Below, one piece after another: positions 845 through 37,746 of a stretch of 64,000 bases of DNA; position 1 is the first letter of the stretch; each line of letters opens with the position of its first letter. The position numbers and the translations under genes are program-made. The stretch is from Zygnema circumcarinatum SAG 698-1b (lineage: Eukaryota > Plantae > Zygnematophyceae), in contig CM074822.1 of assembly GCA_037447605.1 (NCBI GenBank), positions 1,387,492-1,451,491 of the forward strand. Reading direction: 5' to 3'. The notes under the pieces were generated by a model. It was given only the letters and a program-made list of their open reading frames with translations, had not been told where the DNA came from and ran no database searches.

Positions 845-846
845 CT

Positions 847-2777: not shown

Positions 2778-3207
2778 ATGCACCACCTTGCTAAGCCGGC
2801 TCATTACTGGAAGATATGATTTCGAGCTCATGACCCCGAGATGTCATAGGGAGATCTGTGATCAAGTCCATACCCACACTGTCCCATTTTCGGAAGGGAG
2901 GTGTGAGGGGTTGCAGCTGGCCAGGAATCCTGCCAGTGCGGGGTTTGTTTCGTTGACAGGTTGGACAAGCGAGTACATACGCTTTCACGTCCCTCGAGAG
3001 TCCAGGCCACCAGAACTCCCGGAGCAATGCCTCACGAGTTTTGGCAACTCCCATGTGACCCCTGTACGGAGGATCATGTAGCTCACTCAGAATGAGCTGC
3101 CGTACAGTGCCGGCCTTGGGCACGACCAACTGCTGGCCGTGGTACCAAAATCCGTCCTTAGGCACCACTTTGTCCTTATAGCCATTACCTTGGCCATCCA
3201 AGAACAA
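2778..3207 (-). pseudogene. Gypsy integrase (zinc-binding region and start of core), frameshifted
   Basis: HDPPYRGHMGVAKT...WWPGL...CPTCQRNK...WDSVGMDLITDLP, then VMSRLSKVVH in another frame up to the gap. Confidence 0.88.
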
Positions 3208-3641
3208 AGGATCACCAGCATACCCCTCCNNNNNNNNNNGAACAAAGGATCACCAGTATACCCCTCCTGAATCATCCGTCTGAGATCAGAGAGAGCAGGA
3301 GGGTCGACTGCGTCACTGGTGGAGGGATCTATGACAAAGCATACTGGAGACGGAGACTCGGGGTTGGCCGGCCCCTCACCTCTGTCATCTCGTTCCACCA
3401 ACACTCGAGTCGACGAGCGCACCATCCAGGCAAGATGCCGAGGCTGCCTGCTCAGTGGGTCTGCTACATTCAGCCTTCCGGGCCGATAAACCCACTGGCA
3501 GTCAAACCTTTGGAGGAACTCAGACCAGCGTGCCTGCCGCCTAGACAGGGTCTGTTGGGTTGAGAGGAACGTCAGCGGGCGGTGGTCAGTGACCAGCGTG
3601 ACCGCTTTCGCCCCCTCTAAATAGCACCGCCATGTCCTCAA
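3087..3641 (-). pseudogene. Gypsy RNase H C-terminal half and linker
   Basis: WRCYLEG...TDHRPL...QARWSEFLQRFD...PGRLNVADPLSR. Frameshifted relative to the upstream pol ORF. Confidence 0.88.
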
Positions 3642-12735: not shown

Positions 12736-13612
12736 CTCTCCCTCTCCCCCTCCCCCTCTCTCTCGCTCTCTCAAACAATCACAACTTATTCTGTTGCAAT
12801 GTAGATCTCTGCAAGCCGCTCCTGCCGTGATGTATGAAGGGAGAGCGAGCGGCGGAGAGAGAGAGGGTAAGAGGGTGAGAGAGAAAAGTGAGAGGAAGGG
12901 AGAGGGAAGAGGTAGAGGTGGGGAAGTGGGAGAGGGAGTGGGATTTGGAGGGAGAAGGAGAAAGAAAGAGATAGAGGTGGATAGGGAGAGCTGGAGGGAG
13001 AGAGAGAGAAAGAGTGAGAGTCAGAGACGCCTTAAGTGATACCCTAAAATATTAGAACTTTAAATTTCTGAGCCCCCACTAGTGCTGCAGGCGGAGATCT
13101 TGAAGCAGGAGGTTCGCCAGTTGAGGGAAGCTCTCGAGAACGAGAAGCAGTATCTGATGGGGACTGCATCCGGTCTAGACTTACAGGTCACATTCTACAT
13201 TCCTTCTAATAATTAATAGATAAAACCGGATAATTCAATCGAAGCACAGGCCCTTCACTCACACCGAACAACACAACCATTACTGATTAATTTTCGCTAT
13301 AAAATTTTCTCCCCCACACAACACAAAGTAAAAACACCTGCTATCGCCCATCATATCAGGCCTATCCAGAACCCTCCAACTCGCACTCTCTCCCTCTCCC
13401 ACCATCTCAAAAGCTCACATTCCCCTCTACCGCTACCTCCTCCCCATTCGAGTCTCTGACTGTCTACCCCTCACATTCAAAGGCAGCCAATCAACACCCA
13501 CCAATTGGCAGCCTCCTCCTCTCCCATCTGCAGCCAGCATGCACCACACCAAGCAACAATTCTACGCCGTTCGATCTGCCACGTGGCCGCCTGATCTCTT
13601 CCAATCCCTTCC

Positions 13613-14370
13613 TCAGGCTGCGCTCGGCCAAGTGCTCTCAAAGTCCCAACTCAATATCTCGTGCTGTGCTGTCGCGCCCCCGGTCGCGGCGCTGAAACCG
13701 ACGTAAGCATTCGTCAGCCCCGCACATGCTGCGCACGTGATTGGCCGCAACACGCTGCAAAGCGCCGCCGAGTGCGTCAGCAGCGGGTTCGCGGGTTTGA
13801 CATCTCCGGCGTCATCTAGGTACACACTCCATAGTTTCAAGGCGCCGTCGTACTCAATCCAAGCATACTTCACGGTGGCAAAATCATCGAGAAGAGTTGT
13901 GGTTTGAAGCTTGGCAGTTCTCTTAAAGTTTTCACGCACACCCACGAAACGGCTGGCAGGCTCTCCAAGATCGACGTTTTGATAGGTATCGAAAGTAATT
14001 GCTGCACTCCCCACTGAATTTCTGAATGTAGAGTTGTACGTGTATCCAAGATTTCCACCACTTGATCGTCCGAAATAACCCAGCACTGCATTTGAAGTAA
14101 GAAGGAAAAATGTGAAACCATCGACGGTCCGTGCATTGCTGCTGGAAATTTTAAAGGAGAACTTCGTCCTGAATGAAGCCTCTTGGCATCCCCCAGTCGC
14201 ATTGTCTCGTAAAAGTTCGATTGGACTTTGATAGAGTCCGATTCCAGTAAGAATCTTGTTGTCACTTGTTAGTTGCAATCTCCACTGAACGAGCTTTGTT
14301 GAATAGCGACGGAGTATTTCACTTGCAGAAAAAAAGCCCGGGTAGGAGAAACTGGCCGGGGTGCTAGTTG
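13613..14370 (-). CDS. Terminal exon: legume-type (L-type) lectin domain
   Basis: FRTKFSFKI...VDGFTFFL...GGNLGY...ITFDTYQN...YAWIEYDG...YVGFSAATGG...HEILSWDF, then TGA. Acceptor gttcag| at 14371. Confidence 0.92.
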
Positions 14371-17300
14371 CTGAACACCACACAGAGAAACGGTGAAACT
14401 TAAATCAACGTGCAGTGCAGGAAGAAGATTGGGTCAGCATATGGTGCCATAGTTTTGCAGAAATAAAAACGACACTTGCAACCAGGCTTAACCACACTGA
14501 TGTATCGCGAAAGGTTAGCTACCGAGCACAAACTGTCCCAATTCTTTGGAAATTTTGGAAACCTCTCTCTCTCTCTCTCTCTTCGTTCCTTTCTTTCCAT
14601 TCGATTTTTTCCAATTTTCGCCACTCTCATCTCGCCCTCCATTCCTCTCTCGCCTTCCCTCCCTCCCATCCTCACTCCCTCTGCATAATTGCCAATAGGC
14701 CGCGCTTTGAGCAGCCAAGACATCCGCGTGACTACAAACTTTGCATTTGCTTGCAAAGAGCAAGCTCCCTCACATCCGCTTGACAGCAGGCAGGCACACA
14801 AAACATGGTGGGTTCAGCAAAGCCAAAGTGAAATCGCACGAATCGAAGTCATGACCGGCATCAAGAAAACTCCCACCGAGGACTTCCTGAATGCATCCAT
14901 CTGAAACAATCCAAAACATACCTAGAAATGCTCCATAAACCTTTACTTCGCATAAAGTGAAGTCGGGAAAACCCTGGGAGGAGCCACCCAAATGTATTTT
15001 CCGACCAGAGAGGAACATCTTTTGACGAAGGGGAAGCCATCGCTTGTGGGGCCGTACACAAAAACATTAGTGGGGTCGCACTCTGTGTTCCCATACATAC
15101 TGCCATCGTCACCAATCCACACCTGCACTCCATTCAACCGTTCTTGACCAACATCCGTTCTCCCATACAACAAAACAGTGTCCACCACTGCACTATGACG
15201 CAGATCCACCTTCCACCAAAAACCATATCCATTGTAGGAAGGAGTAATAATCGCGCATGAATCTTCTCCAGCATTTACTTTCCCATTGCCGTTGAAGCCG
15301 TCCACTGACCTATTAGCAGTCCAGTAATCTCCCGACTGATATGCGGGCATATAGAGAGCAAGATTGTCTGCGATCTCCAGTTGGAAGAATCACATACAAA
15401 AAAAAAAAAACAAAAGCATATATGAGTTTACATAATGGTGAAACAGAATTGCAAATTTTCATCCACAAAAATATGGTAATGACATTCCTATACTCAAAGA
15501 AAAGTATACTCCTCCAAATACACAACCGCTAATCGACAAGAACCATTCAGACTTAAATCTTCATCCGCCTCTTCGATTCTCAATCATCGTCATTGACCGA
15601 GCATAAAATCTGGAGCACAACTTAATAAAGATAAACATGACTTCGCCACAACACCGACGAATGTAACCTTTAGATTTCTTCAGGAGTGGGCCAAAAAAAA
15701 GTAGATTTCAACTTGCTAAAAAAATGCACCAAAGCAAACGACACAACCGAGGTGCAAGGTTTGAAGGAGAAGGTCGTACAGCCCGGCATGCATAGAACCT
15801 CTTTTGGAACAACGCATTTGACCCTCATTGAACACATTGCTACAAATGAAGTCATCTCGTCTTACCTCTCAGAATTCCAGGAGGTGGGCTCGGAGGTGGA
15901 GGTGGAGGAGATGGCGGGCTTGGAGGTTGTGGAGGTGCTGGCGGTGGCCTTGGTGGAGGTGGACCAAGTGCTACACAGCCGCACACGAGAAAATAAATAT
16001 CAAGATGTGGCTCTTTCCCGTTTTAGAAATAAGTTGATCGACAAGACTTTGAATTTAGCAAGGAAGAACTTGCAATAATCTGTAAAACCGCAAAAACGCC
16101 CGATACTGTGTGCGACGGACAAAACAAAAGAGAATTTCCACCCCTATCCCCATCGCTAGCAAAATAGAAGGAGAAAAGTCAAATCAATCAATCGTCCTCG
16201 GGCTAGATAGCCTTGACGAGTTTCTTTTAATAGTGACCGCATGATCGGATGTCGTCTATCATAATGATGAGTTCGGGATTTGTTTCGCCTGTCACCAACC
16301 GCTCTGGCCTACATTCGGTATTTAGATTGCTGTCACGTTCATTCGCCTTCACTTCGATGTTCTTTTGTTCTGTATAGGTCGCATTTGTCCGCGACAACTG
16401 CGAGGACGTGGATAGCAAAACACAGCTCTCAAGCCCCTCCCTTCCCCCTCTCCTCTCTCGCCTCCTCCTTGAACTTTCACTCGTTACCTCTCTTGTTGCC
16501 TCTCTCTCTCTTTCTACCTCGCACTCCCTCTTATTTTCACCTCTCCAGCCAATCACTCGTCTTGGCCGGGCTATAGGGCCGCGCTCCGCCCAGCCAACAC
16601 TCATGTTGCTTGAAAAGGACCAACCACTCACACCTCCGTTTCACAACGAGCAGACGCGCAGATAATCAATGGGAGCCCATTACATGCTCAGCGAGGTCAA
16701 AGAAAAAAGGGCGCACTGATCTAAGTCATAACCGGCTTCAAGAAAAGATACGCGCAACTAGTTCCTAAATGCATCCGTCGGAAACAATTCAAGACATACC
16801 TAGAAGTGTTCCATAAACCTTAACTTCGCATAGACTGAGGGGAGGACGTGGATGGTACACCCAAACGAAACGTCCGACCAGCGAGGAACACTTCTTGACG
16901 ACCGGGAAGCCATTGTTGAAGTAGTAGTTGTATACGAACACATTGGTGGGGTCGCATTCTGTGTTTCCTTCTCCATTCCACGTCTCATTGTTAGGACCAA
17001 TCCACGCCGTCACTCCATTGAAGAATTCTCCGGGGACATCTGTTCTCCCATACAACAAAACAGTGTCCACAACTGCACTACGAAGTAGATCCACCTTCCA
17101 CCAAGTTGGTGGCCCATATGTGCGCGCGCAAGAATATTCTCCATCATTTACTCTGTCAGTGCCGTTGTAGCCGTCCACAGCCCTATCAGCGGTCCAGTTC
17201 GAGAACGTGTACAACTGAAATGCGGGCTTATGGAGAGCCAGATTGTCTGCAATCTCCACATGAAAAAAAAAAAAAAAGGGCAGCAAGCAGAAGTATATTA

Positions 17301-20300
17301 AGAAACATAAATGTGATCTTTCATCCACAAAGACAAGATAGTGACATTCCCATACATAAGAGTGTAACTCATCCAAATACATAAGCCACTACTCGACACT
17401 AAATAGTCAGATATCGTCATTGACCGTGCACGAAATCTGGAGCACAATTAATAAGGATAAACTTGACTTCACCAGAACACCGATGAATGTAACCTTTAGA
17501 TTCCTTCAGGAGTGGGATAAGAAAATTGGGTTTCAACTTGATAAGGAAACGCTCTGACGAAAAAGACACAACCGAGGTGCAAGGTTTGAAGGAGAAGGTC
17601 GTACAGCGCGGCATGCATAGAACCTCTTTTGGAACAACGCATTTGACCCTCATTGAACACATTGCTACATTGGAAATCATCTCCTCTTACCTCTCAGAAT
17701 TCCAGGCGGTGGGCTCGGAGGTGGAGGTGGGCTTGGAGGAGGAGGTGGAGACGGAGGGATTGGAGGTGACGGCGGCGGAGGTGGAGGTGCTGCAAAGCCG
17801 CACACGAAGAACTAAGCATCAAGTCGTGGTTCCTATCCGCTTTAGAGAGTAGTTGGTCGATCTGACTTTGAGATGAGCAAGAAAACCCGCAATAAAATGA
17901 TAAACCACTAAAACAGTACGATCCTGTGTTCGACGGACAAAACGAACGAGAATGTCCATCCCCATCGCTGGCGGAAGTGCTCTGGCCAGAAAAGACCAGA
18001 ATTTGTTTTTCCTGTCATCAACCGCTCCGCCTTTACATTCTAGGTATTTAGATTTCTCTGCTTTAATCCTCCTTCTCTTCGATGCTCTCCTTGGATGCAT
18101 AGATTGAGTCTGCCCGCAGCAACTTCAAAGCACGTGCATACAAACACTTCTCACTCTCTCAAACTCGCCCTTCCGCCTCTCCTCTCTAAATCTATCCTTC
18201 CCTCCACTCTCTTCTCCTCTTTTCTCTTTCACTTTTTACCTCTCTTGTTGCGCCTCTCCCTCTATCTCTCATTGCCAGGCAACACTCGTCGTGTTGCTCG
18301 AAAAGGACCAACCTCTCCCACATCCGTTTCACAACGAGGACGCGCAGATGATCAAGGAAGACGATTCCACATTCAGCGATGAAGAAAAATGCAGAAAATG
18401 CAGCAGTCTGAAACAGTCCAAAACATACCTAAAGGGGTCCCATAAACCTTTACTTCGCATAAGTGAAGTCGGATTAAACCCTGGGAGGAGCCACCCAAAT
18501 GTATTTTCCGACCAGAGAGGAACATCTTTTGACGAGGGGGAAGCCATTGCTTGTGGGGCTGAACACAAAAACATTAGAGGGGTCGCACTCTGTGTTCGCA
18601 TACATACTGCCACTGTCACCAATCCACACCTGCACTCCATTCAACCGTTCTTGACCAACATCCGTTCTCCCATACAACAAAACAGTGTCCACCACTGCAC
18701 TATGACGCAGATCCACCATCCACCAAAATCCATATCCATTGTAGGAAGGAGTAATAATCGCGCATGAATCTTCTCCAGCATTTACTTTCCCATTGCCGTT
18801 GAAGCCGTCCACTGACCTATTAGCAGTCCAGTAATCTCCCGACTGATATGCGGGCATATAGAGAGCAAGATTGTCTGCGATCTCCAGTTGGAAGAATCAC
18901 ATACAAAAAAAAAACAAAAGCATATATGAGGTTACATTATGGTGAAACAGAAACGGAAATTTTCATCCACAAAAATATGATAATGACATTCCTATACTCA
19001 AAGAAAAGTATACTCCTCCAAATACACAACCGCTAATCGACAAGAACCATTCAGACTTAAATCTTCATCCGCCTCTTCGATTCTCAATCATCGTCATTGA
19101 CCGAGCATGAAATCTGGAGCACACCTTAATAAAGATAAACATGACTTCGCCACAACACCGACGAATGTAACCTTTAGATTTCTTCAGGAGTGGGCCAAAA
19201 AAAAGTAGATTTCAACTTGATAAAGAAATGCACCAAAGCAAACGACACAACCGAGGTGCAAGGTTTGAAGGAGAAGGTCGTACAGCGCGGCATGCATAGA
19301 ACCTCTTTTGGAACAACGCATCTGACCCTCATTGAACACATTGCTACATTGGAAGTCATCTCGTCTTACCTCTCAGAATTCCAGGAGGTGGGCTTGGAGG
19401 TGGAGGTGGAGGAGATGGCGGACTTGGAGGTTGTGGAGGTGCTGGCGGTGGCCTTGGTGGAGGTGGACCAAGTGCTGCACAGCCGAACACGAACAACTAA
19501 GTACAAAGACGTGGCTCTTTTCCGTATTAGAAATAAGTTGATCGACAAGACTTTGAATTTAGCAAGGAAGAACTTGCAATAATCTTTAAAACCGCAAAAA
19601 CGCACGATACTGTGTGCGACGGACAAAACAAAAGAGAATTTCCACCCCTATCCCCATCGCTAGCAAAATAGAAGGAGAAAAAACAAATCAATCAATCGTC
19701 CTCGGGCTACATAGCCTTGACGAGTTTCTTTTAATAGGTGACCGCATGATCGGATGTCGTCTATCATTATGATGAGTTCGGGATTTGTTTCGCCTGTCAC
19801 CAACCGCTCTGGCCTACATTCGGTATTTAGATTGCTGTCACGTTCATTCGCCTTCAGTTCGATGTTCTTTTGTTATGTATAGGTCGCATCTGTCCGCAGC
19901 AATTGCAAGGACGTGGATAGCAATACACAAGCCCTCCCTTCCCCCTCTCCTCTCTCGCCTCCTCCTTGAACTTCCACTCGTTACCTCTCATGTTGCCTCT
20001 TTCCCATTATCTCTCAGTCCCTGTCTTTCACCTCTCCAGCCAATCACTCGTCTTGGCCGGGCTATAGGGCCGCGCTCCGCCCAGCCAACACTCATGTTGC
20101 TTGAAAAGGACCAACCACTCACACCTCCGTTTCACAACGAGCAGACGCGCAGATAATCAATGGGAGCCCATTACATGCTCAGCGAGGTCAAAGAAAAAAG
20201 GGCGCACTGATCTAAGTCATAACCGGCTTCAAGAAAAGATACGCGCAACTAGTTCCTAAATGCATCCGTCGGAAACAATTCAAGACATACCTAGAAGTGT

Positions 20301-23300
20301 TCCATAAACCTTAACTTCGCATAGACTGAGGGGAGGACGTGGATGGTACACCCAAACGAAACGTCCGACCAGCGAGGAACACTTCTTGATGAAGGGGAAG
20401 CCATCGTCGACGTTAAATATGAACACATTGGTGGGGTCGCATTCTGTGTTTCCTTCTCCATTCCACGTCTCATTGTTAGGACCAATCCACACCGTCACTC
20501 TATTGAAGAGTCCTCTGGTGATATCTCCTATCCCATACAACAAAACAGTGTCCACAACTGCACTACGAAGTAGATCCACCTTCCACCAAGTTGGTGGCCC
20601 ATATGTGCGCGAGAAAGAATATTCTCCATCATTTGCTCTGTCAGTGCCGTTGTAGCCGTCCACAGCCCTATCAGCGGTCCAGTTCGAGAAGGTGTACAAC
20701 TGAAATGCGGGCTTATGGAGAGCCAGATTGTCTGCAATCTCCACATGAAAAAAAAAAAAAAAAAGGGCAGCAAGCAGAAGTACATTAAGAAACATAAATG
20801 TCCACTTTCATCCACAAAGACAAGATAGTGACATTCTCATACATAAGAGTGTAACTCATCCAAATACATAAGCCACTACTCGACACTAAATAGTCAGACA
20901 TCGTCATTGACCGAGCATGAAATCTGGAGCACAACTTAATAAGGATAACCATGACTTCGCCAGAACAAAGACGAATGGACCCTTCAGATTTCTTCAGGAG
21001 TGGGATAAGAACATTAGATTTCAAATTGATAAGGAAACTCCCTGAAGAAAACGACACAACCGAGGTGCAAGGTTTGAAGGAGAAGGTCGTATAGCGCGGC
21101 ATGCATAGAACCTCCTTTGGAACAACACACCTGACCCTCATTGAATACATTGCTACATTGCTATATTGCATTTCATCTGGTCCTCTTACCTCTCGGTGGA
21201 GGGCTTGGAGGTGGGTTTGGAGGAGATGGCGGTGGGTTGGGAGGTGGTGGTGGAATTGGCGGCGGCGGTGGGCTTGGCGGCGGTGGACCAAGTTCTGCAC
21301 AGCCGCACACGAAGAACTAAGCATCAAGTCGTGGTTCCTATCCGCTTTAGAGAGTAGTTGGTCGATCTGACTTTGAGATGAGCAAGAAAACCCGCAATAA
21401 AATGATAAACCACTAAAACAGTACGATCCTGTGTTCGACGGACAAAACGAACGAGAATGTCCATCCCCATCGCTGGCGGAAGTGCTCTGGCCAGAAAAGA
21501 CCAGAATTTGTTTTTCCTGTCATCAACCGCTCCGCCTTTACATTCTAGGTATTTAGATTTCTCTGCTTTAATCCTCCTTCTCTTCGATGCTCTCCTTGGA
21601 TGCATAGATTGAGTCTGCCCGCAGCAACTTCAAAGCACGTGCATACAAACACTTCTCACTCTCTCAAACTCGCCCTTCCGCCTCTCCTCTCTAAATCTAT
21701 CCTTCCCTCCACTCTCTTCTCCTCTTTTCTCTTTCACTTTTTACCTCTCTTGTTGCGCCTCTCCCTCTATCTCTCATTGCCAGGCAACACTCGTCGTGTT
21801 GCTCGAAAAGGACCAACCTCTCCCACATCCGTTTCACAACGAGGACGCGCAGATGATCAAGGAAGACGATTCCACATTCAGCGATGAAGAAAAATGCAGA
21901 AAATGCAGCAGTCTGAAACAGTCCAAAACATACCTAAAGGGGTCCCATAAACCTTTACTTCGCATAGAGTGAGGAAATTTGTTGTTGGAATGTACACCCA
22001 AACGAATCGTCCGACCAGCGAGGCACACCTCTTGACGAACGGAAAGGCCTTGCCAAATTTGTGAAACCGGTAAACGTTAGTGGGGTCGCACTCCGTGTTC
22101 CCAATTGCATTCCATGTGTCATTGTAAATTCCGATCCACACCTGCGCTTCATTCAACTGTTCTTGTAGGGAATCTGTTCTCCCATACAACAAAACAGTGT
22201 CCACAACTGCAGTACGAACTAAATCCACCTTCCACCACCTTTTATAATATGTGCTCGCGCACGTATCTTCTCCATAATCTGCTCTGCCATTGCCGTTGTA
22301 GCCGTCCACAGCCCTATCAGCGGTCCAGTTCAGGAAAGTGTTCTCCTGAAATGCGGGCTTATGGAGAGCCAGATTGTCTGCAATCTCCAGTTGNNNNNNN
22401 NNNCTTTCATCCACAAAGACAAGATAGTGACATTCTCATACATAAGAGTGTAACTCATCCAAATACATAAGCCACTACTCGACACTAAATAGTCAGACAT
22501 CGTCATTGACCGAGCATGAAATCTGGAGCACAACTTAATAAGGATAACCATGACTTCGCCAGAACAAAGACGAATGGACCCTTCAGATTTCTTCAGGAGT
22601 GGGATAAGAACATTAGATTTCAAATTGATAAGGAAACTCCCTGAAGAAAACGACACAACCGAGGTGCAAGGTTTGAAGGAGAAGGTCGTATAGCGCGGCA
22701 TGCATAGAACCTCCTTTGGAACAACACACCTGACCCTCATTGAATACATTGCTACATTGCTATATTGCATTTCATCTGGTCCTCTTACCTCTCGGTGGAG
22801 GGCTTGGAGGTGGGTTTGGAGGAGATGGCGGTGGGTTGGGAGGTGGTGGTGGAATTGGCGGCGGCGGTGGGCTTGGCGGCGGTGGACCAAGTTCTGCACA
22901 GCCGCACACGAAGAACTAAGCATCAAGTCGTGGTTCCTATCCGCTTTAGAGAGTAGTTGGTCGATCTGACTTTGAGATGAGCAAGAAAACCCGCAATAAA
23001 ATGATAAACCACTAAAACAGTACGATCCTGTGTTCGACGGACAAAACGAACGAGAATGTCCATCCCCATCGCTGGCGGAAGTGCTCTGGCCAGAAAAGAC
23101 CAGAATTTGTTTTTCCTGTCATCAACCGCTCCGCCTTTACATTCTAGGTATTTAGATTTCTCTGCTTTAATCCTCCTTCTCTTCGATGCTCTCCTTGGAT
23201 GCATAGATTGAGTCTGCCCGCAGCAACTTCAAAGCACGTGCATACAAACACTTCTCACTCTCTCAAACTCGCCCTTCCGCCTCTCCTCTCTAAATCTATC

Positions 23301-26300
23301 CTTCCCTCCACTCTCTTCTCCTCTTTTCTCTTTCACTTTTTACCTCTCTTGTTGCGCCTCTCCCTCTATCTCTCATTGCCAGGCAACACTCGTCGTGTTG
23401 CTCGAAAAGGACCAACCTCTCCCACATCCGTTTCACAACGAGGACGCGCAGATGATCAAGGAAGACGATTCCACATTCAGCGATGAAGAAAAATGCAGAA
23501 AATGCAGCAGTCTGAAACAGTCCAAAACATACCTAAAGGGGTCCCATAAACCTTTACTTCGCATAGAGTGAGGAAATTTGTTGTTGGAATGTACACCCAA
23601 ACGAATCGTCCGACCAGCGAGGCACACCTCTTGACGAACGGAAAGGCCTTGCCAAATTTGTGAAACCGGTAAACGTTAGTGGGGTCGCACTCCGTGTTCC
23701 CAATTGCATTCCATGTGTCATTGTAAATTCCGATCCACACCTGCGCTTCATTCAACTGTTCTTGTAGGGAATCTGTTCTCCCATACAACAAAACAGTGTC
23801 CACAACTGCAGTACGAACTAAATCCACCTTCCACCACCTTTTATAATATGTGCTCGCGCACGTATCTTCTCCATAATCTGCTCTGCCATTGCCGTTGTAG
23901 CCGTCCACAGCCCTATCAGCGGTCCAGTTCAGGAAAGTGTTCTCCTGAAATGCGGGCTTATGGAGAGCCAGATTGTCTGCAATCTCCAGTTGAAAAATAA
24001 TAAAATACTAACAAGCAGAAGTATATACAGTCATCTTAATGTGAAACATAATTGCAATTTTTCATCCACCAAAAACAAATATTCACGTCCTATGCATAAA
24101 GCTTAGAATAACTCATCCAAATACACAACTGCTCGACAAATACTAGTCAGACTTAACCATCCGAATATCTTTATCCGCCTGTTCGATTCTCAATCATTCT
24201 CATTGATAGAACATGAATTCTGAAAAACAATTTATGAAGGCTAAACATGACTTCGCTCGAACAACGACGAATGTAACCTTCATATTTCTCTAGGAATGTG
24301 ATCAGAAACTTAAATTTCAACTGGAAAAAGAAACGTTCGAAAGAGAAACACACAACCGAGGTGCATAGTTTGAAGGAGAAGGTCCTATAGTGCGACATAT
24401 GTGGTCTTTTGCATCAACGTGGCTGACCCCGGTTGAATTCATTGCTACCAATAAAATTATCTCGTCCTCTCACCTCTCGGAGGTGGAGATGGCGGGCTTG
24501 GAGGTGGCGGCGGTGGGCTTGGCGGAGGTGGACCAAGTGCTGCACAGCCGCACACGAAGAACTGAGTATCAAGACGTAGGTCTTTTCCGTTTTAGAAAGA
24601 AGTTGATTGACAAGACTTAGAATTAAGCAGGAAAAACCTGCAATAATCTGCAAAACCGCAAAAACATACGATCCTGTGCGTGACAGACAAAAGGAAAAAA
24701 AAATTCCCCTCCCATCCCCATCGCTGGTAAAGATGCTAAGGCCAGAAAATTTCAAAATTTGTTCCTCCTGTCAACAACCGCTCTCACCTCCTCCTTGAAC
24801 TTCCACTCGTTACCTCTCATGTTGCCTCTTTCCCATTATCTCTCAGTCCCTGTCTTTCACCTCTCCAGCCAATCACTCGCTGCACAGTCGTGGACGGGAT
24901 ATGAGGCCGTGCTCAGCCCAGCCAACACTCGAGTTCCTCAAAAAGGACCAACCGCTTACACATCCGTTTCACAACGAGCAGACGCGCAGATAATCAATGG
25001 GAGTCGATTCCACATTCATTGAGGTCAAAGAAAACAAGGCGTACTGTTCTAAGTCATAACCGGCATCACGAAAAAACACACGCAACGAGGAGTTCCTAAA
25101 TTCACCCGTCTGAAGCAATCCAACACATACCTAGAGGTGTTCCATAAACCTTCACTTCGCATAAAGGGAGGTAGGTGAAGGTTGGAAGGTACACCCAAAC
25201 GAAACGTCCGACAACGGAACACCTCTTGACGAACGGGACGCCAATGTTTGTGGCGTTGAGCACGTTAGTGGGGTCGCACTCTGTATTCCCTATTCCTTTC
25301 CACGTGCCATTGTTAAAACCGATCCACACCGTCACTCCATACAAGAAATGTTGGTAGTAATCTTTCGTCCCATACACCAAAACAGTGTCCACAACTGCAC
25401 TACGAACTAAATCCACCTTCCACCAAATTGGAGGCCCATCATCTAAGGTAGTCATCGCGCATGTATATGTACTGAAGTAGCCGAGGCCTTCGTCGCCGTC
25501 CACAGCTTTATCAGCTGTGTAAAGGGAATAAAAATTGTTCACCTGAAATGAAGGCTTATGGAGGGCCAGATTCTCTGCAAACTCCAGTTGAATAACAATT
25601 ACATACAAACACACGATTTCACTCATGTGAGGGACACATGGGGAAGATACATCTCAAACATGATAAACACGCACGCATTGAATGTGATTCCTATGAACGC
25701 ATTTACAGTACCAACCGTCTCCTGTCGCTCATTATGATCCCCATTGCCTCAATTCATTCTCTTGCAATGGCCCTCTTAGTTTTTTTTTCTTTCAAACGAC
25801 CAAAATCCCGCACTTTTTTGTCTCTCCCTCCTATTCTCCTGATTCTCTTACGCCCACCACGCCATTTTCAACTCTCATTGATCCTTTTCTTAATTAATCT
25901 TCTCGGTTCTCTCTTTTCTCTTACTTATTTCGTTTCAACCCAAACGATTCACTCTTTACATCTTCTCCATTGAATGACACCCTATCCATTTTTTCCTCAC
26001 TTTTGTGCTCAACCACCCGTTTTTCTCTTTCTCTCTCCTGTGATCTGCTCTCTCCTTTTCTTTCCCAAGCCTTAATCACTTTTTCCTCCTCTCTCCCCCC
26101 CCACAAAATATATTGACGTTCTAATGGCATAGAAATTAGAATAACTCATCCAAATACACAACAACTGCTCGACAAAAAATGGCCCGACTTAACCATCCAA
26201 ACATCTTCATCCGCCTCTTCTATTCTCAATCATCGTCAACGATAGAGCATCAAATCTGGAGCACATCTTAAGAAGTATAAACATGATTTCGCTAGAACAC

Positions 26301-29300
26301 CGACGAACATACCCTTTATACTTCTTCAGGACTGGGATAGTAAATGATATTTCAACTTGATAAGGAAACGCGCCTTAGCAAAAGGCACAACCAAGATGCA
26401 CGGTTTGAAGGAGAAGGTCGTGCAGCGCGGTATGCATAGAACCTCCATTGGGAAAACGCATCTGACCCTCATTGAATCCATTGCTACAAATGGAGTCATC
26501 TCGTCCTCTTACCTCTCGGAACTGGAGATGGAGGGCTTGGAGGTGGGGCAAGTCCTGCACAGCCGTACAAGAAGAAGTATCAGGCGTGGTTCCTTTCCGT
26601 TTTAAACAGTAGTTGATCAAGAAGCCTCTGAATTAAGCATGAAAACACCTCCAATTACATGATAAACCACAAAACGTACAATCCTGTGTTCGACGGACAA
26701 AACAAAAGAAAATTTCCAAACCCATCGCTAGCAAAAATGCTAAGGCCAGAAAAACTCAGAATTTGTTTCTCCAATCATCAACCGCTCTGCCTTTACAGTC
26801 CAGGTATTTAATATCTCTCCATTAATCCTCCTCTTCGATGCTCTCCTTGGATGCATAAAGTTCAAACTTCAACTTCAAAGCACGTCGATTCTCCCTTCCC
26901 CCTCTCCTCTCTAAATCTATCCTTGTCCTGTTTTATCTTTCACTCTTTACCTCGCCTGTCGCGCCTCTCCCGCTAACTCTCACTCCCAGCCAACACTCGT
27001 GTTGCTCAAAAAGGACCAACCACTCACACATCCGTTTCACAACGTGCAGATGCGCTGATAATCAATGGGAGCCCATTTCACGCTCAGCAAGGTCAAAGGA
27101 AAATAGACGCACTGATCTAAGTCATAACCGGCATCAAGAAAACGTGAACCGAGGATTTCCTGAATGCATCCATCTGAAACAATCCAAAGCTTACCGATAA
27201 ATGCTCCATAAACCTTCACTTCGCACAGATCGAGCCAATTATAGGAGTCGGTTACTCGGTACACCCAAACGTAACGTCCGACAAGGTCGGAACACCTCTT
27301 GACGAACGGGAAGCTATTGTTCATGTTTATTGTTAACTCGAAAGTGTTCCAGGGTTCGCACTCTGTGTTCCCTACTCCATTCCACGTTTCATTGTTAATT
27401 CCGATCGTCACCTTCACTACATTCGATTGCCGTTCAGTCAAGATGGACGATTGACCCACATAAATCAAAACTGTGTCCACAAGTGCACTACGAACTAAAT
27501 CCACCTTCCACCAAGTTGGTGGTAGCCCATGAGTTAAAGTGCAAGACTGTCCATTGCCGTCCACAGCCCAATCGGGGTGATCATATTTGTTTGATCCAGC
27601 CAGAAATGCGGGCTTATGGAGAGCCAGATTTTCTGCAATCTCCAGTTGAAAAACAATTAGATACCAAAAAGCAGAATTATATATGCGGTCATCTTATTGT
27701 GGAACGTAAATGCAATTTTTCATCCACAAAAATAATATAATGACATTCCTATTCATGTGTGTAACTCATCCAAATACACAACTACTCGACAAAACTTAAC
27801 AGAACAAACACCTTTATCTGCCCCTTCAATTCTCAATCATCGTCATTGGCCGAGCATAAAATCTGGAGCACAACTTAATAACGATAAACATGACTTTGCC
27901 ACGATTGTAATATTTAGATTTCTTTAGGATGGGATAAGATAACTAAATTTCAACTGAATTAAACGCTCTGAAACAAAAGATAGAACCGAGGTGGAAGGTT
28001 TGAAGGAAGGTCGCATAGAGCGGCATCCATAGTGTGATGGTTAGTGATGCTGCAGGTTGTACTGACGTGTGTACGGAGGTTGCATGGGCATGTGTACGGA
28101 CATGTGTACGGATGAAAGAGGATCATTTGTGTGAGAGTATTCGGGAATGTACGAGGAGGACGCAAAGAGGCAGATGAAGCATCACAGGAAGATGAAGAGT
28201 TCAGGAAGGAGAATTCTAGAAGCAGAGACTGAGAGTAGAAAGAAGAGCAGCCAGAGAGCAAGCATAGAAGGAAGGAAGAAGGCAGAAGGAGTGAAGAGCA
28301 GAAAAGCTGAGCAGCAGAGGAAGAGAGAGAGAGAAGAATGAAGAGAAATGTATGAAGGCTTTTTATGAAATAAAGAAAGTGTTATGGAAATTTCCTGATG
28401 TCTTGTGAATGATCTTGATGGGACTGAGAGGTGTGTCCATCGTATGAATGTTGTAAGTGGAAATGTTTTCTTTGTCACATAGAACCTCTTTTGGACATCG
28501 CATCTGACCCTGATTGAATACATTGCTACATTGCTATATTGCATTTCATCTCGCCCTCTTACCTCTCGGTGGAGGGCTGGAGGTGGACGTGATGGCGGTG
28601 GCCTTGGAGGTGGTGGTGGCGGTGGGCTTGGCGGAGGTGGACCAAGTGCTGCACAGCCGTACACGAAGGACTAAGTATCTTGGTTGCTTTCCGTCTTTAG
28701 AGAGTAGTTGATTGTTCTTAATCTAAGTCATAACCGGCACCTAAAAAAGGAACGTACTACGAAATGTTACTGAAGCCATCCGTGGGGATTAATGCAAGAC
28801 ATACCTAAAAATGTTCCATGAACCTTTACTTCGCAAAGAGTGAGAACAGTATAGATTGGAAGGTACACCCAAACGAAACGTCCAACCAGCGAGGAACACC
28901 TCTTGACGAACGGGAAGCCATCGCTTGTGGGGCCGTACACAAAAACATTAGCGGGGTCGCACTCTGTGCTCCCTGTTCCATTCCAAGAGTAAGAGGGGAG
29001 GGGAGGGGAGGGAGGAAGGAAGGGAGGGAGGGGAGAGAGTAAGAGGCATTGGCATTGTAAAGTCCAATCCATACCTGCACTCCATTCAACCGTCTTTGGG
29101 CGGCATCTGTTCTCCCATACAATGCAACAGTGTCCACAACTGCACTACGACCTAAATCCACCTTCCACCAAATTGGTGGCCCAATATCAGTGGTAGTGCT
29201 CGCGCATGTATCTTCTCCAGCATCTGCTCTGCCATTGCCGTTGTAGCCGTCAACAGCCCTATCAGCGGTCCAATTCAAGTAACTGCTCGCCTGAAATGCG

Positions 29301-30781
29301 GGTTTATTGAGAGCCAGATTCTCTGCAATCTCCGGTTGAAAAACAATAACATACAAACACACGATTTCACTTATGTGAGGGACGACTGGGGGAGATACAA
29401 ATCAGACATGATAACCACACACGCATTGAATGTGATGCCAATGTAACGCATTTACAGTACCAACCATCTCCTGTCCACCCTCTTATAATCCCCACTGCCT
29501 CAATTCATTCTCATCCTTTGCAATGGCTCTCTTAGTCCATTTTCCTTGCTTACTACGTCTAAACTCCCGCCCTTCCCTGTCTCTACCTTCTATTCTCCTG
29601 ATTCTCTTACGCCCACCGCCATTTTCCTCTCTCACTGATCATTTTCTTAATTAATCTTCTCGGTTCACTATTTTCTCTTTCTTATTTCGTTTGGCCCCTA
29701 ACGATCTGTTCACATTTTATCACCTTCTCCATTGAATGACACCCTATCCAAATATTCCTCACTTTTGTCCACAACCACTCGTTTTTACCTCAACAGTGTT
29801 CTGCTCTCTCCTTTCTCTCCCAAGCCTTACTCACTTCATCCTCTTCTCTCCACCTTCCTCTCCAGTTTCTTCCATGCTCTACCTTTCCCCTCCCGTCTTC
29901 CCTCCCCCCTTGCCCTTCCCCTTGCCCTTGTCCTCCTCTACATATCCTCCCCTCCCCCGATGCCCTACAACCTTGCCCTCCCCCACTGCGCTTGCCCTCT
30001 CCCCATGCCCTCCCCCCTGCCCTTGACTTTCCCCCCTTGTCCTTCCAACCCCCCTTGCCACCCCACATTGCCTTCCCCCTCCCCTTCTCCTTCCCCTTGC
30101 CCCTGCACTCCCCCCTTGCCCTCCCACCTTGTCCTTACTCCCTGCCCTTGCCCTCCTCCCTATGTCCTCCCCTCCCCCCATGCCCTCCCCCGTTGCCCTC
30201 AGCCCTGGCCCTCTCCCCCTGCACTCACCCGAAAGCCCTTAGCCTCCCCCCCTTGTCCTCCCTTCCCCCTCTGGCCTCCCACCTTCATCACTCCCTGCCC
30301 TTGCGCCCTTGCCCTCACGCCCTTGTCCTCCCCTCCCCTCTGCCCTCCCCCCTTTCCCCCTCCCCCCTTGCCATCCCCCCCTTGCCCTCCCCCCCTTCCT
30401 TCCCCCCTTTCCCCCCTGCTATCCACCCCCTGTCGTCCACCTCTTGCCCTCCCCCCCGCCCTCCCCCTTTGTCCTTCCACCTTGACCTCCTCCTTGCCCC
30501 TGCCCACCCCCCTACCCCTCCCCCCCTTGCCCTCCCCCCCTGCCCTCCCCCCCTTCCCCCTCACCTCCTGCCCCCATCCCCCTCGCACTACCCCCCTTCC
30601 CCTTCCCCCCCTGCCCTCCCCCTCCTTTCCCTCCNNNNNNNNNNTGGCCTCCCCCTTCTGCCCTCCCCTCCCCCCCTCCCCTCCCCCCTGGCCCTCCCCT
30701 CCCCCCCTTCTCACCTTCCGCTTTGCAGCATCCCACAACGAGGAGGACGAGTGCGACCCATCCGACCCATTGCCGGCCCAT
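13613..30781 (-). CDS. Multi-exon secreted chimeric lectin: signal peptide - (F-type lectin - Ser/Pro-rich spacer)x8 - F-type lectin - L-type lectin; 19 coding exons, ~1,850 aa if lesions are repaired
   Basis: Manual splice reconstruction: all donors are G|gt and all acceptors are yag| in phase 1, so frames join (AE-E-NLAL; FL-A-LGPPP; LR-D-NLAL; FL-A-TSTP). Four exons carry frame-breaking lesions. Confidence 0.85.
14922..15367 (-). CDS. F-type lectin exon A; 1-nt deletion near the 3' end
   Basis: DNLAL..PAYQ...SVDG...CAIIT...WWKVDL...YGRTDVGQERLNG...TECDP...KRCSSLVG. Length is 446 bp, so LCEVKVYG falls in another frame. Confidence 0.85.
15866..15970 (-). CDS. Ser/Pro-rich spacer exon A
   Basis: 105 bp, tag|...|gtaag: [34 protein letters not shown]. 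Confidence 0.85.
16800..17246 (-). CDS. F-type lectin exon B (intact)
   Basis: 447 bp, open: NLALHKPAFQ...RAVDG...CARTYG...GRTDVPGEFFN...LCEVKVYGTLL. Confidence 0.9.
17691..17789 (-). CDS. Ser/Pro-rich spacer exon B
   Basis: 99 bp, cag|...|gtaag: [32 protein letters not shown]. Confidence 0.85.
18429..18874 (-). CDS. F-type lectin exon C (TAA plus 1-nt deletion near the 3' end)
   Basis: Near-identical to exon A. Reads WVAPPRV-TAA-SDFT and has lost one t before tgcgaa; length 446 bp. Confidence 0.85.
19370..19474 (-). CDS. Ser/Pro-rich spacer exon C
   Basis: 105 bp, paralog of spacer A with the same splice sites. Confidence 0.85.
20291..20731 (-). CDS. F-type lectin exon D (intact)
   Basis: 441 bp, open. 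Paralog of B, with the loop changed to GIGDITRGLFN. Confidence 0.9.
21190..21294 (-). CDS. Ser/Pro-rich spacer exon D
   Basis: 105 bp: [34 protein letters not shown]. Confidence 0.85.
21934..22377 (-). CDS. F-type lectin exon E (intact)
   Basis: 444 bp, open: CASTYYKRWWKVDL...GRTDSLQEQLN...LTLCEVKVYG. Confidence 0.9.
22789..22893 (-). CDS. Ser/Pro-rich spacer exon E (copy of D)
   Basis: Appears identical to 21190-21294 at an offset of 1599 bp. Confidence 0.8.
23533..23976 (-). CDS. F-type lectin exon F (copy of E)
   Basis: Appears identical to 21934-22377 at an offset of 1599 bp. Confidence 0.85.
24474..24539 (-). CDS. Ser/Pro-rich spacer exon F
   Basis: 66 bp, cag|...|gtgag: [21 protein letters not shown]. 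Confidence 0.85.
25131..25574 (-). CDS. F-type lectin exon G (intact)
   Basis: 444 bp, open: NLALHKPSFQ...KAVDG...CAMTT...GTKDYYQHFLY...LPLCEVKVYG. Confidence 0.9.
26513..26554 (-). CDS. Ser/Pro-rich spacer exon G
   Basis: 42 bp, cag|...|gtaag: [13 protein letters not shown]. Confidence 0.8.
27195..27632 (-). CDS. F-type lectin exon H (intact, most divergent)
   Basis: 438 bp, open: NLALHKPAFLAGSNKYDHPDWAVDG...CTLTH...WWKVDL...LDLCEVKVYGAFI|gtaag. Confidence 0.88.
28563..28648 (-). CDS. Ser/Pro-rich spacer exon H (1-nt deletion)
   Basis: 86 bp. Reads ccagccct where the paralogs have ccaagccct. Confidence 0.8.
28805..29322 (-). CDS. F-type lectin exon I, disrupted by a 50-bp insertion
   Basis: 518 bp. 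Removing 50 bp between the repeats agagtaagag (28986 and 29036) gives an open 468-bp exon containing GRTDAAQRRLN. Confidence 0.85.
29880..30714. repeat. C-rich (G-rich on the sense strand) low-complexity tract within intron 1
   Basis: (ccct/cccttgc)n with an N gap at 30635-30644. Confidence 0.85.
30715..30781 (-). CDS. First exon: signal peptide of the lectin gene
   Basis: ATG at 30781: MGRQWVGWVALVLLVVGCCKAE, then G|gtgag. It has a basic n-region, a hydrophobic core and a C-K-A cleavage-like site, and its phase 1 matches the downstream acceptors. Confidence 0.75.
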
Positions 30782-32260: not shown

Positions 32261-34019
32261 GAGGGAGGGCGCTGCCTTAGTGGGAGTGAGGAGGTTCGTG
32301 GACTCGGAGGGAGAGAACTTCGGCTTTGGATATCAAGGGGAGGAGAGTAGGATTGTTGAGTGGCGGAACTTTGACCGGAATTTGTTTGTTGGGTTTGCAG
32401 CCCAAGAACTTGTAAAAGAGAAATTAGGGTTAGGGTTAGTTTTAGGGCTAGGGTCAGGGTTTAATGGGGCTTCACCTTCAGGAGGGGCTTCAATTAGAGG
32501 CTCTGTGAAGGGGTCTACTCATTAGGGATGATGAATGGGTTTCAGTACAGGAGAGAGGGGAGTGGTAGAGAGGAGGGAGGGAGGGATTGGAGGTCGAGAG
32601 GGAGAGAAACGCTCTCTGTCTCTCTCTTTCTTTGAATTGGGTCTTTTGAATAAGAGCTCTATTGGTAGTGGGCTAAGCCTCTTACCTTAGCAACCGAATA
32701 GGTATTACACGTATTACCTTATTACCTACGACATTTACTAATGGGTTAGACTCCCTCTCTCCCTCTCCCTCTCCCTGTCCCTCTCCCTCTCCCTCTCCCT
32801 CTNNNNNNNNNNCCTCTCCCTCTCCCTCTCCCTCTCCCTCTCCCTCTCCCTCTCCCTCACCCTCACCCTCACCCTCCCTCTCCCTCTCCCTCCCTCTCTC
32901 TCTCTCTCTCCCCCCTCTCCCACTCCCTCCCTCCCTCCCTCCCTCCCTCCCTCCCTCCGTACACTCATGCGAGCCGGCTGTCTCCTTCTGTCTCCTGATC
33001 TTCTCTTCTCTCAGATGCGTTTCATATCTCACTGCCCTCACTCTCGTGCCGTTCCCTCTTCCGCTTCTGCTTTCTACCTGCTTCTACCACTCCTCTTTCC
33101 CAAACTTGCTCGTCCATTACCCAGCTCTCTCCCTCTCCCTCGCTCTGCAGCTCTCCCACGTTCCCATTCCGAGCGGTTTTAGGGTTTTGCTTAACTTGCA
33201 GTTTTAGGATTGCCCCTTTAAATTAAATTCCTTTTGGTACCCCTTATTTTCACTAGAAGAGGAGAGAGTTAATTTAGTGGCACCTAAATGATCTTTAAAA
33301 GGATGAGGTCACGCACTCTCATTCTCAAATTGTGTTCAAATCAATACATGAATAGATGATGCCGATACGCTCTGTCTCTCTCCCTTTCCCTCTCTCACAC
33401 TCTCTCCTCCCGCCCCCACTTCCGCTTCCTCACCCTCTCCAACAGCCTCCCGCCCACACCACACAAAATCTCCCTCTCCAACACCATTTTCCGCACCCTC
33501 TCCCTCTCCCTCGCCGTTTCCCGCTCTCTCTCTCCCTCTACGCCACACTCCTCGCCTTCTTGTTCTCCCTCTCCTTTTTCTCGCCCTCATCCACATCACC
33601 CTCTCCCTCGCCTTCTCCTCTCCTTTCCCTCACCCTCTCCCTCTCCCTCTCCCTCTTCCTCTCCCTCTCCCTGTCCCTCTCCCTCTCCTTTCCAGTACAA
33701 GGTAGCTCTGGTATTGGGTTTCTCTCCGCATGAACCCCACTCTCCCCCCCCTTCCAGCCATTCCACACAAGCACATCTAACGATTAGAATTAAAAGAACA
33801 AATAAAGTGGCTTCCAATATAGCCGTTCAAAGCCCTTGACAAAGCCGTGACATGACATGACCAGTGTACTGATTTTTTACGTCATCGGCCAACCAGAATA
33901 TGGCGTAAAGCGTGCGATATTTTCAACGAATTGGAGAATTGATTCACACGTGTTGTATGTACCAAACCAATTAGAGATTTTTGACTCCCAGTGAGCAAAG
34001 TCCAAGTTAGCTTTTACAT

Positions 34020-35352: not shown

Positions 35353-37544
35353 ACTCATGCCTCAAATGCGCTTGAAAAGTTTGATGGGACAAACTGGCAC
35401 GACTGGAAGTTTCAGTGCCAGCAGCTTTTTGAGGAAGAGAATCTGTGGTCTGTCGTTACTGGTTCAGAGATCTGTCCTTTGCCACTTGCCTCCACCGTCG
35501 ACGCGGCCGCCTTGGCTGCACGCACGAAGGAGATCGCCGATTGGACAAAACGCGACAAGAAGGCGTTCGTNNNNNNNNNNCCTTGGTCCCGCCGCCGTCG
35601 CCCGCCGTACACCCCTCTCTTCACCCCGGCTTCCCCCCCCTTGCCGGCCCGCCTCCAACCCCGGGTGTCGTCTATGGTGCTCCCGAGTTCGGTCACGCCT
35701 TTCTGGCCGCAGACCCTTTTGGGTATGACCCTTCTCTCCCTGACTCCACTTGGCTTATTGACTCGGGTGCCTCCCATCATCTAACCTTTCGTCGTGACTG
35801 GTTCTCTCGGCTCTCTCCCCTCCCTCTCCCCATGACCATTTTCTTAGGGGATAATCGCTCCTTGGCTGCAACGCATGTCGGCCAGGTTTCCACTCTAATT
35901 GACGGCCAGCGCTTCATCATCGATGACGTCTACCTGGTGGATGGCCTAGCGAAGAATCTGTTTTCAGTAGCCTCTATCCTGATTTTAGGCATTTCAGCTC
36001 TCTTTAGGCCAGACGGGGTCACCTTCTTCACCCCAGACGCTGTAGTTGGGCACGGCCGCAAAACTGGCCGCTTGTTTTCCCTTACCTCTTTTGCGGCCTC
36101 CCTTGGGCACGCCCATGCTCACACCACTGACCCCCCCCTTACCTTTGCTCGGTGGCACCTTCGCTTTGGCCACCTTGCTGAAAGTAGCCTCAGAACTCTC
36201 GGACAGGGCTTAGTGTTAGGTTTAGACTCTTTCTCCACCGAAAAGTTAGACTTTTGTTCAGGCTGTATTCAAGGAAAAATGACCAGATTGCCTTTTCCCT
36301 CAAGCTCCACCCTTGTCTCTGAGCCTCTGGCACTCATTCATTCTGATGTCTGTGGCCCTATGCGCGATGTTAGCCTCGGCGGCGCATCATACTTTGTCAC
36401 TTTCATTGACCAAGCGACTCATTTTTCCCATGTTTTTCCCATCGCTCACAAGTCTGACGTTTTCTCCCGCTTCCAAGAGTTCAAAGCCCGTGCAGAGACC
36501 CTTCTCGGCCGCCGCATCAAGACCCTTCGNNNNNNNNNNAAAAACAACACGTGGGACCTTGTCCCCCTTCCACCCGGCCGTCGCGCCATCGGCTCTAAAT
36601 GGGTCTTTAAAATCAAACAAAAATCCGACGGCTCGGTTGACCGCTACAAAGCCCGTTTTGTAGCCAAGGGGTTCTCTCAGCTCGAAGGCATCGACTTCAC
36701 CGAAACTTATGCCCCGGTGGCCAAATTCACCTCCATTCGCGTCCTCCTTGCCCTCTCCGCCACTCACGATTGGGAAATTCACCAGATGGATGTCAAAACC
36801 GCCTTCCTCTACGGGGACCTTCAAGAAACGATTTTTATGCGCCAACCCGACGGGTATGTCACTCCCGGCACCGAACACCTCTTCTGCCGCCTCAACAAAT
36901 CCATCTATGGCCTCCTGCAAGCACCACGCGTCTGGAACCGCACTTTGGATGCTGTCCTTCTTACCAGCGGCTTCTCTCGGGCTGATGCCGATTTCAGCAT
37001 CTATCTTCGTGGCCACGGTCAGACCCTCACCATCCTTGCCGTTTACGTTGATGACTTAATTATCTGTGGTCCCTCTCTTTCCCCCATTTCGGATGTCAAA
37101 AAGCTCCTTCGCAGCCATTTTGACATGACGGACCTCGGCGAACTGCAATGGTGTCTCGGGATTCACGTCATTCGAGATCGGGCTGCTCGGACCCTTCACC
37201 TCAGTCAGGAAAAGTATGTTTCCGATCTCCTTGACCGATTTGGGATGGCCGCTTGCAACCCCATCTCCACCCCCCTTGACGCCCACATTCACCTTACCTC
37301 CCTTGTGGCTGGCTCCCCCGACCCCACAGAGCATGCCACTTACCGATCCATCGTGGGATCTCTTATGTATGCAATGCTGTGTACCCGGCCCGACCTAGCT
37401 GCCGCCGTCGGGCAGCTCAGCCAATACCTTCACCGCCCCTCTTCTGCTCACTTCAGCGCTGCCAAGCGTGTCCTTCGCTACCTTCAGGGCACCAAGGCCC
37501 TGAGCCTTACCTTCTCCTCTGGCTCCCCCACCCTCGTTGGCTAT
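35345..37544 (+). CDS. Copia polyprotein (Gag-PR-INT-RT-RH), interrupted by four N gaps
   Basis: DGTNWHDWKF (Gag); WLIDSGASHHL (PR); WHLRFGHL, CSGC and IHSDVCGPM (INT); NNTWDLV and YVDDLII (RT); LVGY (RH start). Confidence 0.92.
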
Positions 37545-37746
37545 NNNNNNNNNNGTCGTTTTCCCAGCCACGTGTACTTACACCTGGCTGTCCTTTTAGC
37601 TTGTACTTTCTCAGTTAGTTTAGTTGTGCTTTTGCGGCTCTGTGCTTACACCTAGCCGCCCTTACTCAGGCTAGTTCCACACTCTTTTGTCGTGTAGCTC
37701 TAGCCGCAATGTATATAAAACAGATTAGGACATTGTACTCTTTACC

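Follow-up and report, generated by a model that had tools for sequence, protein, structure and literature searches.

Whether the short open reading frames scattered over some 17 kb of the genome of Zygnema circumcarinatum SAG 698-1b belong to one gene, and what such a gene would make, is the question raised by positions 30781 to 13613, on the minus strand, of the 64,000-nucleotide window analyzed here (GenBank assembly GCA_037447605.1, contig CM074822.1, positions 1,387,492 to 1,451,491; coordinates below are those of the whole 64-kb window). A preliminary description had spliced the pieces by hand into a single gene for a secreted chain of F-type lectin domains (FTLDs) on extensin-like stalks, capped by a legume lectin. 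We consider it probable, at roughly 60%, that the locus is a strongly expressed gene for a secreted, multivalent glycan-binding protein of the wall or matrix, about 1,650 amino acids long, in which a signal peptide would be followed by approximately eight domains of F-type lectin fold, split by Ser-Pro-rich linkers of the extensin type, and by one C-terminal L-type lectin. Secretion, glycosylation on hydroxyproline and multivalent glycan binding are predicted features of this product.

The minus strand carries 19 exon-like modules, of which one is signal-peptide-like, nine are FTP-like, eight are Pro-rich and one encodes the L-type lectin. The first, a block of 67 nt, opens with ATG and codes MGRQWVGWVALVLLVVGCCKAE up to the donor G/GTGAGA (a slash marks the exon boundary), and in the 6.7 kb upstream of the first FTP exon no other ATG combines a hydrophobic N-terminal segment with a donor of phase 1. 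The nine FTP blocks of approximately 440 nt begin after ..TTGCAG/ and end with ..G/GTATG, the eight Pro-rich (SP) blocks of 42–105 nt begin after ..GTGCAG/ and end with ..AGAG/GTAAG, and the terminal block of 758 nt runs through to the stop codon. All 18 introns proved to be of phase 1 (donor after codon base 1, acceptor before base 2), as had been proposed, and all 18 have GT-AG ends. No further FTP or L-lectin exons were found elsewhere in the 64-kb window. The modules, in the order of transcription and all on the minus strand, are as follows.

30715..30781, minus strand: exon 1, read from the sequence, with the start codon, 22 signal-peptide-like residues and the phase-1 donor G/GTGAGA
28805..29322, minus strand: FTP1 exon, 518 nt, interrupted by a 62-nt CT-rich block (29052-28991) without GT-AG ends
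28563..28648, minus strand: SP1 Pro-rich exon, 86 nt, one base fewer than SP4 near 28578
27195..27632, minus strand: FTP2 exon, 438 nt, intact
26513..26554, minus strand: SP2 Pro-rich exon, 42 nt
25131..25574, minus strand: FTP3 exon, 444 nt, intact
24474..24539, minus strand: SP3 Pro-rich exon, 66 nt
23533..23976, minus strand: FTP4 exon, 444 nt, intact
22789..22893, minus strand: SP4 Pro-rich exon, 105 nt
20805..22393, minus strand: probable false duplicate with "FTP5" (22377-21934) and "SP5" (21294-21190), 100% identical to 22404-23992 and ending at an N gap
20291..20731, minus strand: FTP6 exon, 441 nt, in frame; the conserved Cys and the Arg of GRTD are both missing
19370..19474, minus strand: SP6 Pro-rich exon, 105 nt
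18429..18874, minus strand: FTP7 exon, 446 nt, with a base missing at the T-run 18478-18476, which leads to an in-frame stop
17691..17789, minus strand: SP7 Pro-rich exon, 99 nt, with deep RNA contig coverage
16800..17246, minus strand: FTP8 exon, 447 nt, intact; modelled, with the F-type lectin fold recovered
15866..15970, minus strand: SP8 Pro-rich exon, 105 nt, joined to FTP8 and FTP9 in one RNA contig (X1) at low depth
14922..15367, minus strand: FTP9 exon, 446 nt as assembled; in frame with the one additional base that X2 and X3 RNA has at the run 14968-14971
13613..14370, minus strand: last exon, L-type (legume) lectin domain and stop codon, with RNA coverage on to ~13454 (3' untranslated region)

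Six public RNA runs of the same organism contain 31–45% of the words sampled from 13400-17400, close to the share of exons in that interval. RNA contigs of four runs were mapped on 13300-17900, covering the last exons only, where the exons reach a depth of 100–35,000 and the introns one of 0–75, mostly below 20, a difference of several hundredfold. The splice joint 14370/14922, from the L-lectin exon to FTP9, is present in X1, X2 and X3, and the joints 15367/15866 and 15970/16800 lie together in a 468-nt X1 contig that spans FTP8, SP8 and FTP9. The ends of all three confirmed joints are CT..AC, which reads GT..AG on the minus strand. Across its last four exons, transcription and splicing of the locus follow the prediction, and to this extent the claim that the pieces form one gene is confirmed. 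The two lectin folds are indeed fused in the RNA.

The assignment of the repeats to the F-type lectin family, made originally from the sequence alone, holds both by profile and by modelled structure. The FTP repeats match Pfam F5_F8_type_C_2 at 3e-8 to 1e-6, and a profile built from the modules matches the solved FTLDs 3CQO (MsaFBP32, both domains) at 2.3e-29 and 1K12 (eel agglutinin) at 2.7e-13, as well as the fucose modules of pneumococcus (2J1R, 8e-11) and S. mitis (3LE0, 2e-7); the next family in the search, neuropilin F5/8C, scores only 2e-3. For the AlphaFold model of FTP8 (pLDDT 88.6) the eleven best Foldseek matches are all FTLDs (TMq 0.73–0.79), placed above chitosan-binding modules and CBM32, and the TM-score to 2J22, 3CQO and 1K12 is 0.75–0.80. 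For the last exon, Pfam, PDB sequence matches and the modelled fold likewise agree with the proposed L-type lectin: PF00139 (Lectin_legB) is hit at 1e-32 with 113.9 bits (cut-off 26.3), the PDB yields 95 legume lectins at E ≤ 1e-3, and the model (pLDDT 85.7) has a TM-score of 0.76–0.83 to pea lectin 2BQP. By language-model features, the nearest clusters of this domain are from Streptophyta. In the 5.8-billion-protein collection, the closest relatives of the same length as the L-lectin (13616-14368, minus strand) are metagenomic proteins approximately 30% identical to it, which stand above the few named plant proteins listed. Most of the best ten relatives carry PEP-CTERM (PF07589), which suggests that they are bacterial.

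The linkers, 14–35 residues in length, are 66% Pro and contain 11 SP3+ runs in 174 residues, in agreement with the Ser-Pro spacers and SPPP-type runs noted in the preliminary description. Classical extensins typically carry the Tyr cross-linking motifs YXY or VYK; no Tyr occurs in the linker peptides, which consequently lack both. To judge by their composition, the linkers are extensin-like glycomodules without cross-linking motifs. If they are hydroxylated and arabinosylated, they would become stiff spacers that keep many weak glycan-binding sites apart, and the protein could then bind with avidity to, or cross-link, repetitive polysaccharide or glycoprotein surfaces. The candidate surfaces would be the wall or mucilage of the alga itself, partner cells and microbes.

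How many modules the protein has depends on a gap in the assembly. On its two sides, the gap at 22394-22403 has the same 1,589 bases without a single difference (20805-22393 and 22404-23992); the left copy stops exactly at the gap and the right copy starts exactly after it. Other repeat pairs in the array have 72–92% identity (blastn), as against 100% for the pair that flanks the gap. Such an exact overlap of suffix and prefix at an N gap points to two contig ends that were scaffolded with Ns and not merged, and "FTP5" and "SP5" are, on this sequence pattern, most probably an assembly duplicate of FTP4 and SP4. With the duplicate collapsed, the array comprises eight FTP and seven Pro-rich exons, for a total of 17 exons. 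The modules of the 19-exon gene initially reconstructed do lie on the minus strand at the places given for them, but the exon number drops by two and the nine F-type lectin domains become eight; similarly, the proposed length of ~1,850 amino acids is reproduced (1,848) if the lesions described below are neutralized, and is reduced to 1,665 when the false duplicate is removed as well. False duplicate modules may be frequent in other repeat-rich genes of this assembly, too. The gap at 30635-30644 lies in intron 1, 71 nt past the donor of exon 1, in G/A-rich low-complexity sequence, and touches no coding sequence; it was considered as a second contig overlap and rejected, there being no shared suffix and prefix. 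A 23-bp overlap flanks the gap at 32803-32812, and the remaining 10-N gaps in the window show none. Intron 1 itself is, at 29900-30710, a long low-complexity stretch rich in CT/GA and in short tandem repeats, which gives rise to spurious open reading frames of 200–365 amino acids on both strands.

The repeats that remain after this correction differ in age. The duplicated units include introns, each having the form FTP exon, intron, SP exon, intron, and tandem duplication of such units would have enlarged the array. The youngest event is a 3.5-kb block of two units (14890-18890 versus 18397-22393, 91.7% by blastn), in which exons are 95–96% and introns 96–97% identical and the ratio of nonsynonymous to synonymous substitution (dN/dS) is ~2 on few changes. 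Between older modules dN/dS is 0.4–0.7, which argues that they have been kept as coding sequence and is compatible with a retained coding function combined with fast-evolving loops.

Several observations weigh against the view that the window holds an intact gene for the lectin chain outlined above, and the alternatives that they support have to be considered one by one. The gap at 30635-30644 places the candidate signal-peptide exon on a different contig piece from the array; the exon at 30781-30715 named in the preliminary description does have a phase-1 donor and is the only upstream candidate, but, lying beyond that gap, its membership in the gene is something that we infer. FTP1 holds the 62-nt block that is not an intron, and SP1 and FTP7 are each 1 nt short in the assembly. 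The X1 contig that joins the L-lectin exon has an FTP7-like loop of the assembly's length, with the frameshift kept. The commonest joints, found in all four runs, lead from an SP7-like end into the beginning of FTP9 and from an FTP8-like 3' end into the beginning of an SP7-like exon, which is not the assembled order, and SP8 is barely covered by RNA, its assembled joint to FTP9 having a depth of 86 in one run. More than half of the mapped RNA contigs are only 95–99% alike to the locus, and ~43% are at least 99% identical. These off-order joints and diverged contigs indicate that part of the RNA stems from alleles, close paralogues or exon skipping, among which the RNA contigs cannot distinguish. 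Loose contig ends at 16800 and 17198-17202 add starts of Pro-rich exons (EIGPPPPSP.., ELGPSPPNPP..) as well as KPASQENTW, a variant FTP N-terminus, none of which the window contains, and these are expressed paralogues or alleles of the same family. Finally, the diagnostic sugar motif of FTLDs is complete in no module, and the Mn2+ site of the L-type lectin is degenerate, with two of four Mn2+ ligands gone and the Ca2+ site largely kept.

The frame breaks are of two kinds. In four assembled exons the length is not divisible by three (FTP1, 518 nt; SP1, 86 nt; FTP7, 446 nt; FTP9, 446 nt), so that the earlier statement that every internal exon is frame-neutral fails for these exons as assembled. 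The CT-rich block of FTP1 (29052-28991) is flanked by a short direct repeat, CTCTTACTCT, and has no intron-like ends; its interpretation as a small intron was rejected because GT-AG, GC-AG and AT-AC ends are all lacking, and the cryptic GT..AG pairs nearest to it would excise 103 or 112 nt (counted by hand), with the frame lost either way. The other three lesions are 1-nt losses: SP1 has one A fewer than SP4, and FTP7 and FTP9 each miss one T from a T-run just ahead of the last β-strand, LCEVKVYG. All three (14968-14971, 18476-18478 and ~28578) fall in short homopolymer runs within coding exons. The X2 and X3 RNA contigs match FTP9 with one mismatch and one extra A after 14967, and with this additional base the exon is open between acceptor and donor and reads ...VAPPRVFPDFTLCEVKVYGAFL; the shifted frame of FTP9 is thus either a fault of the assembly or a difference between strains. 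That RNA contigs contradict one of these 1-nt losses suggests residual indel errors in the assembly. No near-identical peptides covering the 5' exons or the state of FTP1 were found in the 5.8-billion-protein collection.

Taken at face value, these lesions would describe a partly decayed copy that is transcribed and spliced into an mRNA broken in FTP1, SP1 and FTP7, while the functional protein and much of the RNA come from a close paralogue. The four frame-breaking lesions, the X1 contig that links a frameshifted FTP7-like variant to the L-lectin exon, and the majority of contigs at 95–99% similarity, along with several junctions and SP variants that the mapped stretch does not encode, all speak for decay, as do the dN/dS of ~2 in the youngest duplicates and the loss of the conserved Cys in FTP6. 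We nevertheless regard it as doubtful: about 43% of the mapped contigs match the locus at 99% identity or better, the frame-restoring base that X2 and X3 supply for FTP9 is typical of a homopolymer assembly error, the homopolymer context is common to all three 1-nt lesions, and the 251-codon frame of the L-lectin and five FTP exons are intact.

The off-order joints could have another source. Since all internal module boundaries are of phase 1, any skip keeps the frame, and FTP/SP pairs might be included or skipped as cassettes, giving lectin isoforms of differing length and content from which damaged modules are removed in frame. The joint 15367/17691, from the SP7 end to the FTP9 start with FTP8 and SP8 skipped, occurs in four of four runs at a depth of 589–3,278, against the depth of 86 for the SP8/FTP9 joint in its single run, which speaks for this explanation. 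Its shorter side, however, comprises only 22–25 letters, over which SP7 and SP8 differ by one base, so that an allele or paralogue explains it equally well; a "backward" joint that runs from the FTP8-like end into the start of SP7 (17791/16803) is just as abundant and fits an array with its modules in another order, not skipping, and the contigs cannot phase isoforms. Cassette splicing at this locus therefore seems to us distinctly improbable. A more far-reaching version, which we rate as very unlikely, is that the FTP/SP exon pairs are true cassettes through which the locus and neighbouring paralogues would yield combinatorial multivalent lectins with differing binding loops, a Dscam-like diversification for the recognition of cell surfaces or microbes.

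Sugar binding by the lectin modules needs separate consideration. The metal ligands of concanavalin A follow the pattern E8, D10, Y12, N14, D19, H24. In an alignment to the Pisum lectin 5T7P, the Mn2+ ligands of the terminal domain are changed from E to T and from H to F, D, Y and N are kept, and a D is replaced by E; the sugar-contacting Asp, Gly and Asn are retained, within VDGFTFF, SSGGNLGY and FDTYQN. The FTLD sugar motif is HX24RXDX4(R/K) (PMC12221842). Across the modules, its His is replaced by R, R, S, M, L, S, I or I; FTP1, 4, 7, 8 and 9 retain R-x-D, and the final basic residue is found only in FTP1, 7 and 9. The Ca2+ motif h2DGx appears as A-V-D-G throughout the modules, with S-V-D-G in FTP7 and FTP9, and x is Y, F, D or N, thus not always small and hydrophilic. 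The fucose specificity of F-type lectins, which the preliminary description had carried over, is not transferable to modules that all lack the motif His, and a classically bound fucose is probably not their ligand. On these grounds, the modules might bind no sugar at all, the product being a structural proline-rich wall protein with β-sandwich domains as knobs for protein-protein contact or self-assembly; the incomplete motif and the replaced Mn2+ ligands Glu and His would be expected of such a protein, and reviews describe FTLDs that were co-opted to non-lectin roles (PMC5712786). This is, in our estimation, unlikely, because the Arg-x-Asp core persists in five modules and the DG of the Ca2+ site in all, the sugar-contacting residues of the L-lectin are kept, and the algal F-type lectin bryohealin binds N-acetylglucosamine (GlcNAc) and N-acetylgalactosamine (GalNAc) through a non-canonical motif (PMC12221842).

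The relatives of the modules are distant. A search of 1.84 billion cluster representatives gave as its best matches multi-FTLD proteins of animals, 30–44% identical, which include a 13-FTLD protein of Xenopus and proteins of amphioxus, fish and marsupials. The protein encoded in the window is itself absent from this library, in which the best identity is 44%, and none of the 150 best FTLD-bearing representatives has an L-lectin domain or at least three SPPP runs. Word-index searches retrieved no close relatives of single-module length, and the best matches in the 5.8-billion-protein collection are animal fucolectins or PEP-CTERM L-lectins, 30–37% identical, the latter probably bacterial. The most similar short metagenomic protein, P0146, occurs only on contigs of 1.1–1.25 kb, the context of which is uninformative. 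FTLDs are reported from green algae and not from higher plants (PMC5712786), and a full-text literature search found no publications that tie them to streptophyte or zygnematophyte algae.

Four known systems resemble the array in part. The tandem F-type lectins of animals (MsaFBP32/MsFTL1, 3CQO; the Xenopus tropicalis 13-FTLD "fucolectin" LOC100491211; amphioxus) share with it the family, the fold and the presence of many FTLDs per secreted chain, and they are its best sequence matches, at 30–40% identity per domain. They differ in having the canonical His/Arg/Arg fucose motif and directly adjoining domains with no Ser-Pro linkers in between, and they are combined with pentraxin, EGF, CTLD or CCP domains, with no L-type lectin or SPPP runs in the 150 best. 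Bryohealin of the green alga Bryopsis plumosa, set beside the array by description, is an FTLD protein with a non-canonical motif, whose ligands are GlcNAc/GalNAc, not fucose, and which aggregates extracellular material; Pro-rich linkers and an L-type lectin are both lacking, and the neighbour of its FTLD is an antibiotic domain (PMC12221842). The chimera-type lectins of Solanaceae (potato STL, Datura DSA, tomato LEL) are likewise secreted, with carbohydrate-binding modules split by an extensin-like Ser-Hyp domain (PMC5485984), but the modules are chitin-binding hevein domains, there is one linker versus seven or eight, and the proteins are far shorter. The legume lectins of streptophytes (seed lectins and L-type lectin receptor kinases), together with the bacterial PEP-CTERM L-lectins, share the PF00139 domain; here the L-lectin caps an FTLD array C-terminally, with no kinase and no membrane anchor, and with the Mn2+ Glu and His replaced. 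The preliminary description did not recognize the architecture from described proteins. For the mixture of FTLDs with an L-lectin or with SPPP runs this stands among the 150 best matches, while lectins with extensin-like linkers had been described before (PMC5485984). Lectin modules on extensin-like linkers are an already known kind, to which the combination of FTLD and L-lectin adds.

The surroundings of the gene are rich in transposons, with a gypsy-type protease, reverse transcriptase (RT) and RNase H at 3650-5791 on the minus strand, a copia-type RT with a GAG-pre-integrase domain at 35445-37655 on the plus strand, and a hAT dimerisation domain at 54978-57620 on the plus strand. The last part of the window, 60000-64000, has a GC content of 0.66–0.75, a strong C skew and an open reading frame of 853 amino acids without a Pfam match.

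For genome analysis, the locus exhibits two kinds of assembly error that will concern all repeat-rich genes of this genome, namely the unmerged overlap at an N gap and the loss of single nucleotides in homopolymers. The array represents exon shuffling through symmetric phase-1 modules, and it forms a very highly expressed gene that unites two unrelated lectin folds with linkers of the extensin type. Were the exon pairs to act as true cassettes after all, a Dscam-like diversification of lectins would exist in an alga closely related to land plants. A product made as modelled would be a candidate for the cross-linking of wall or mucilage, for cell-cell adhesion in conjugation or for the agglutination of microbes in a lineage near land plants.

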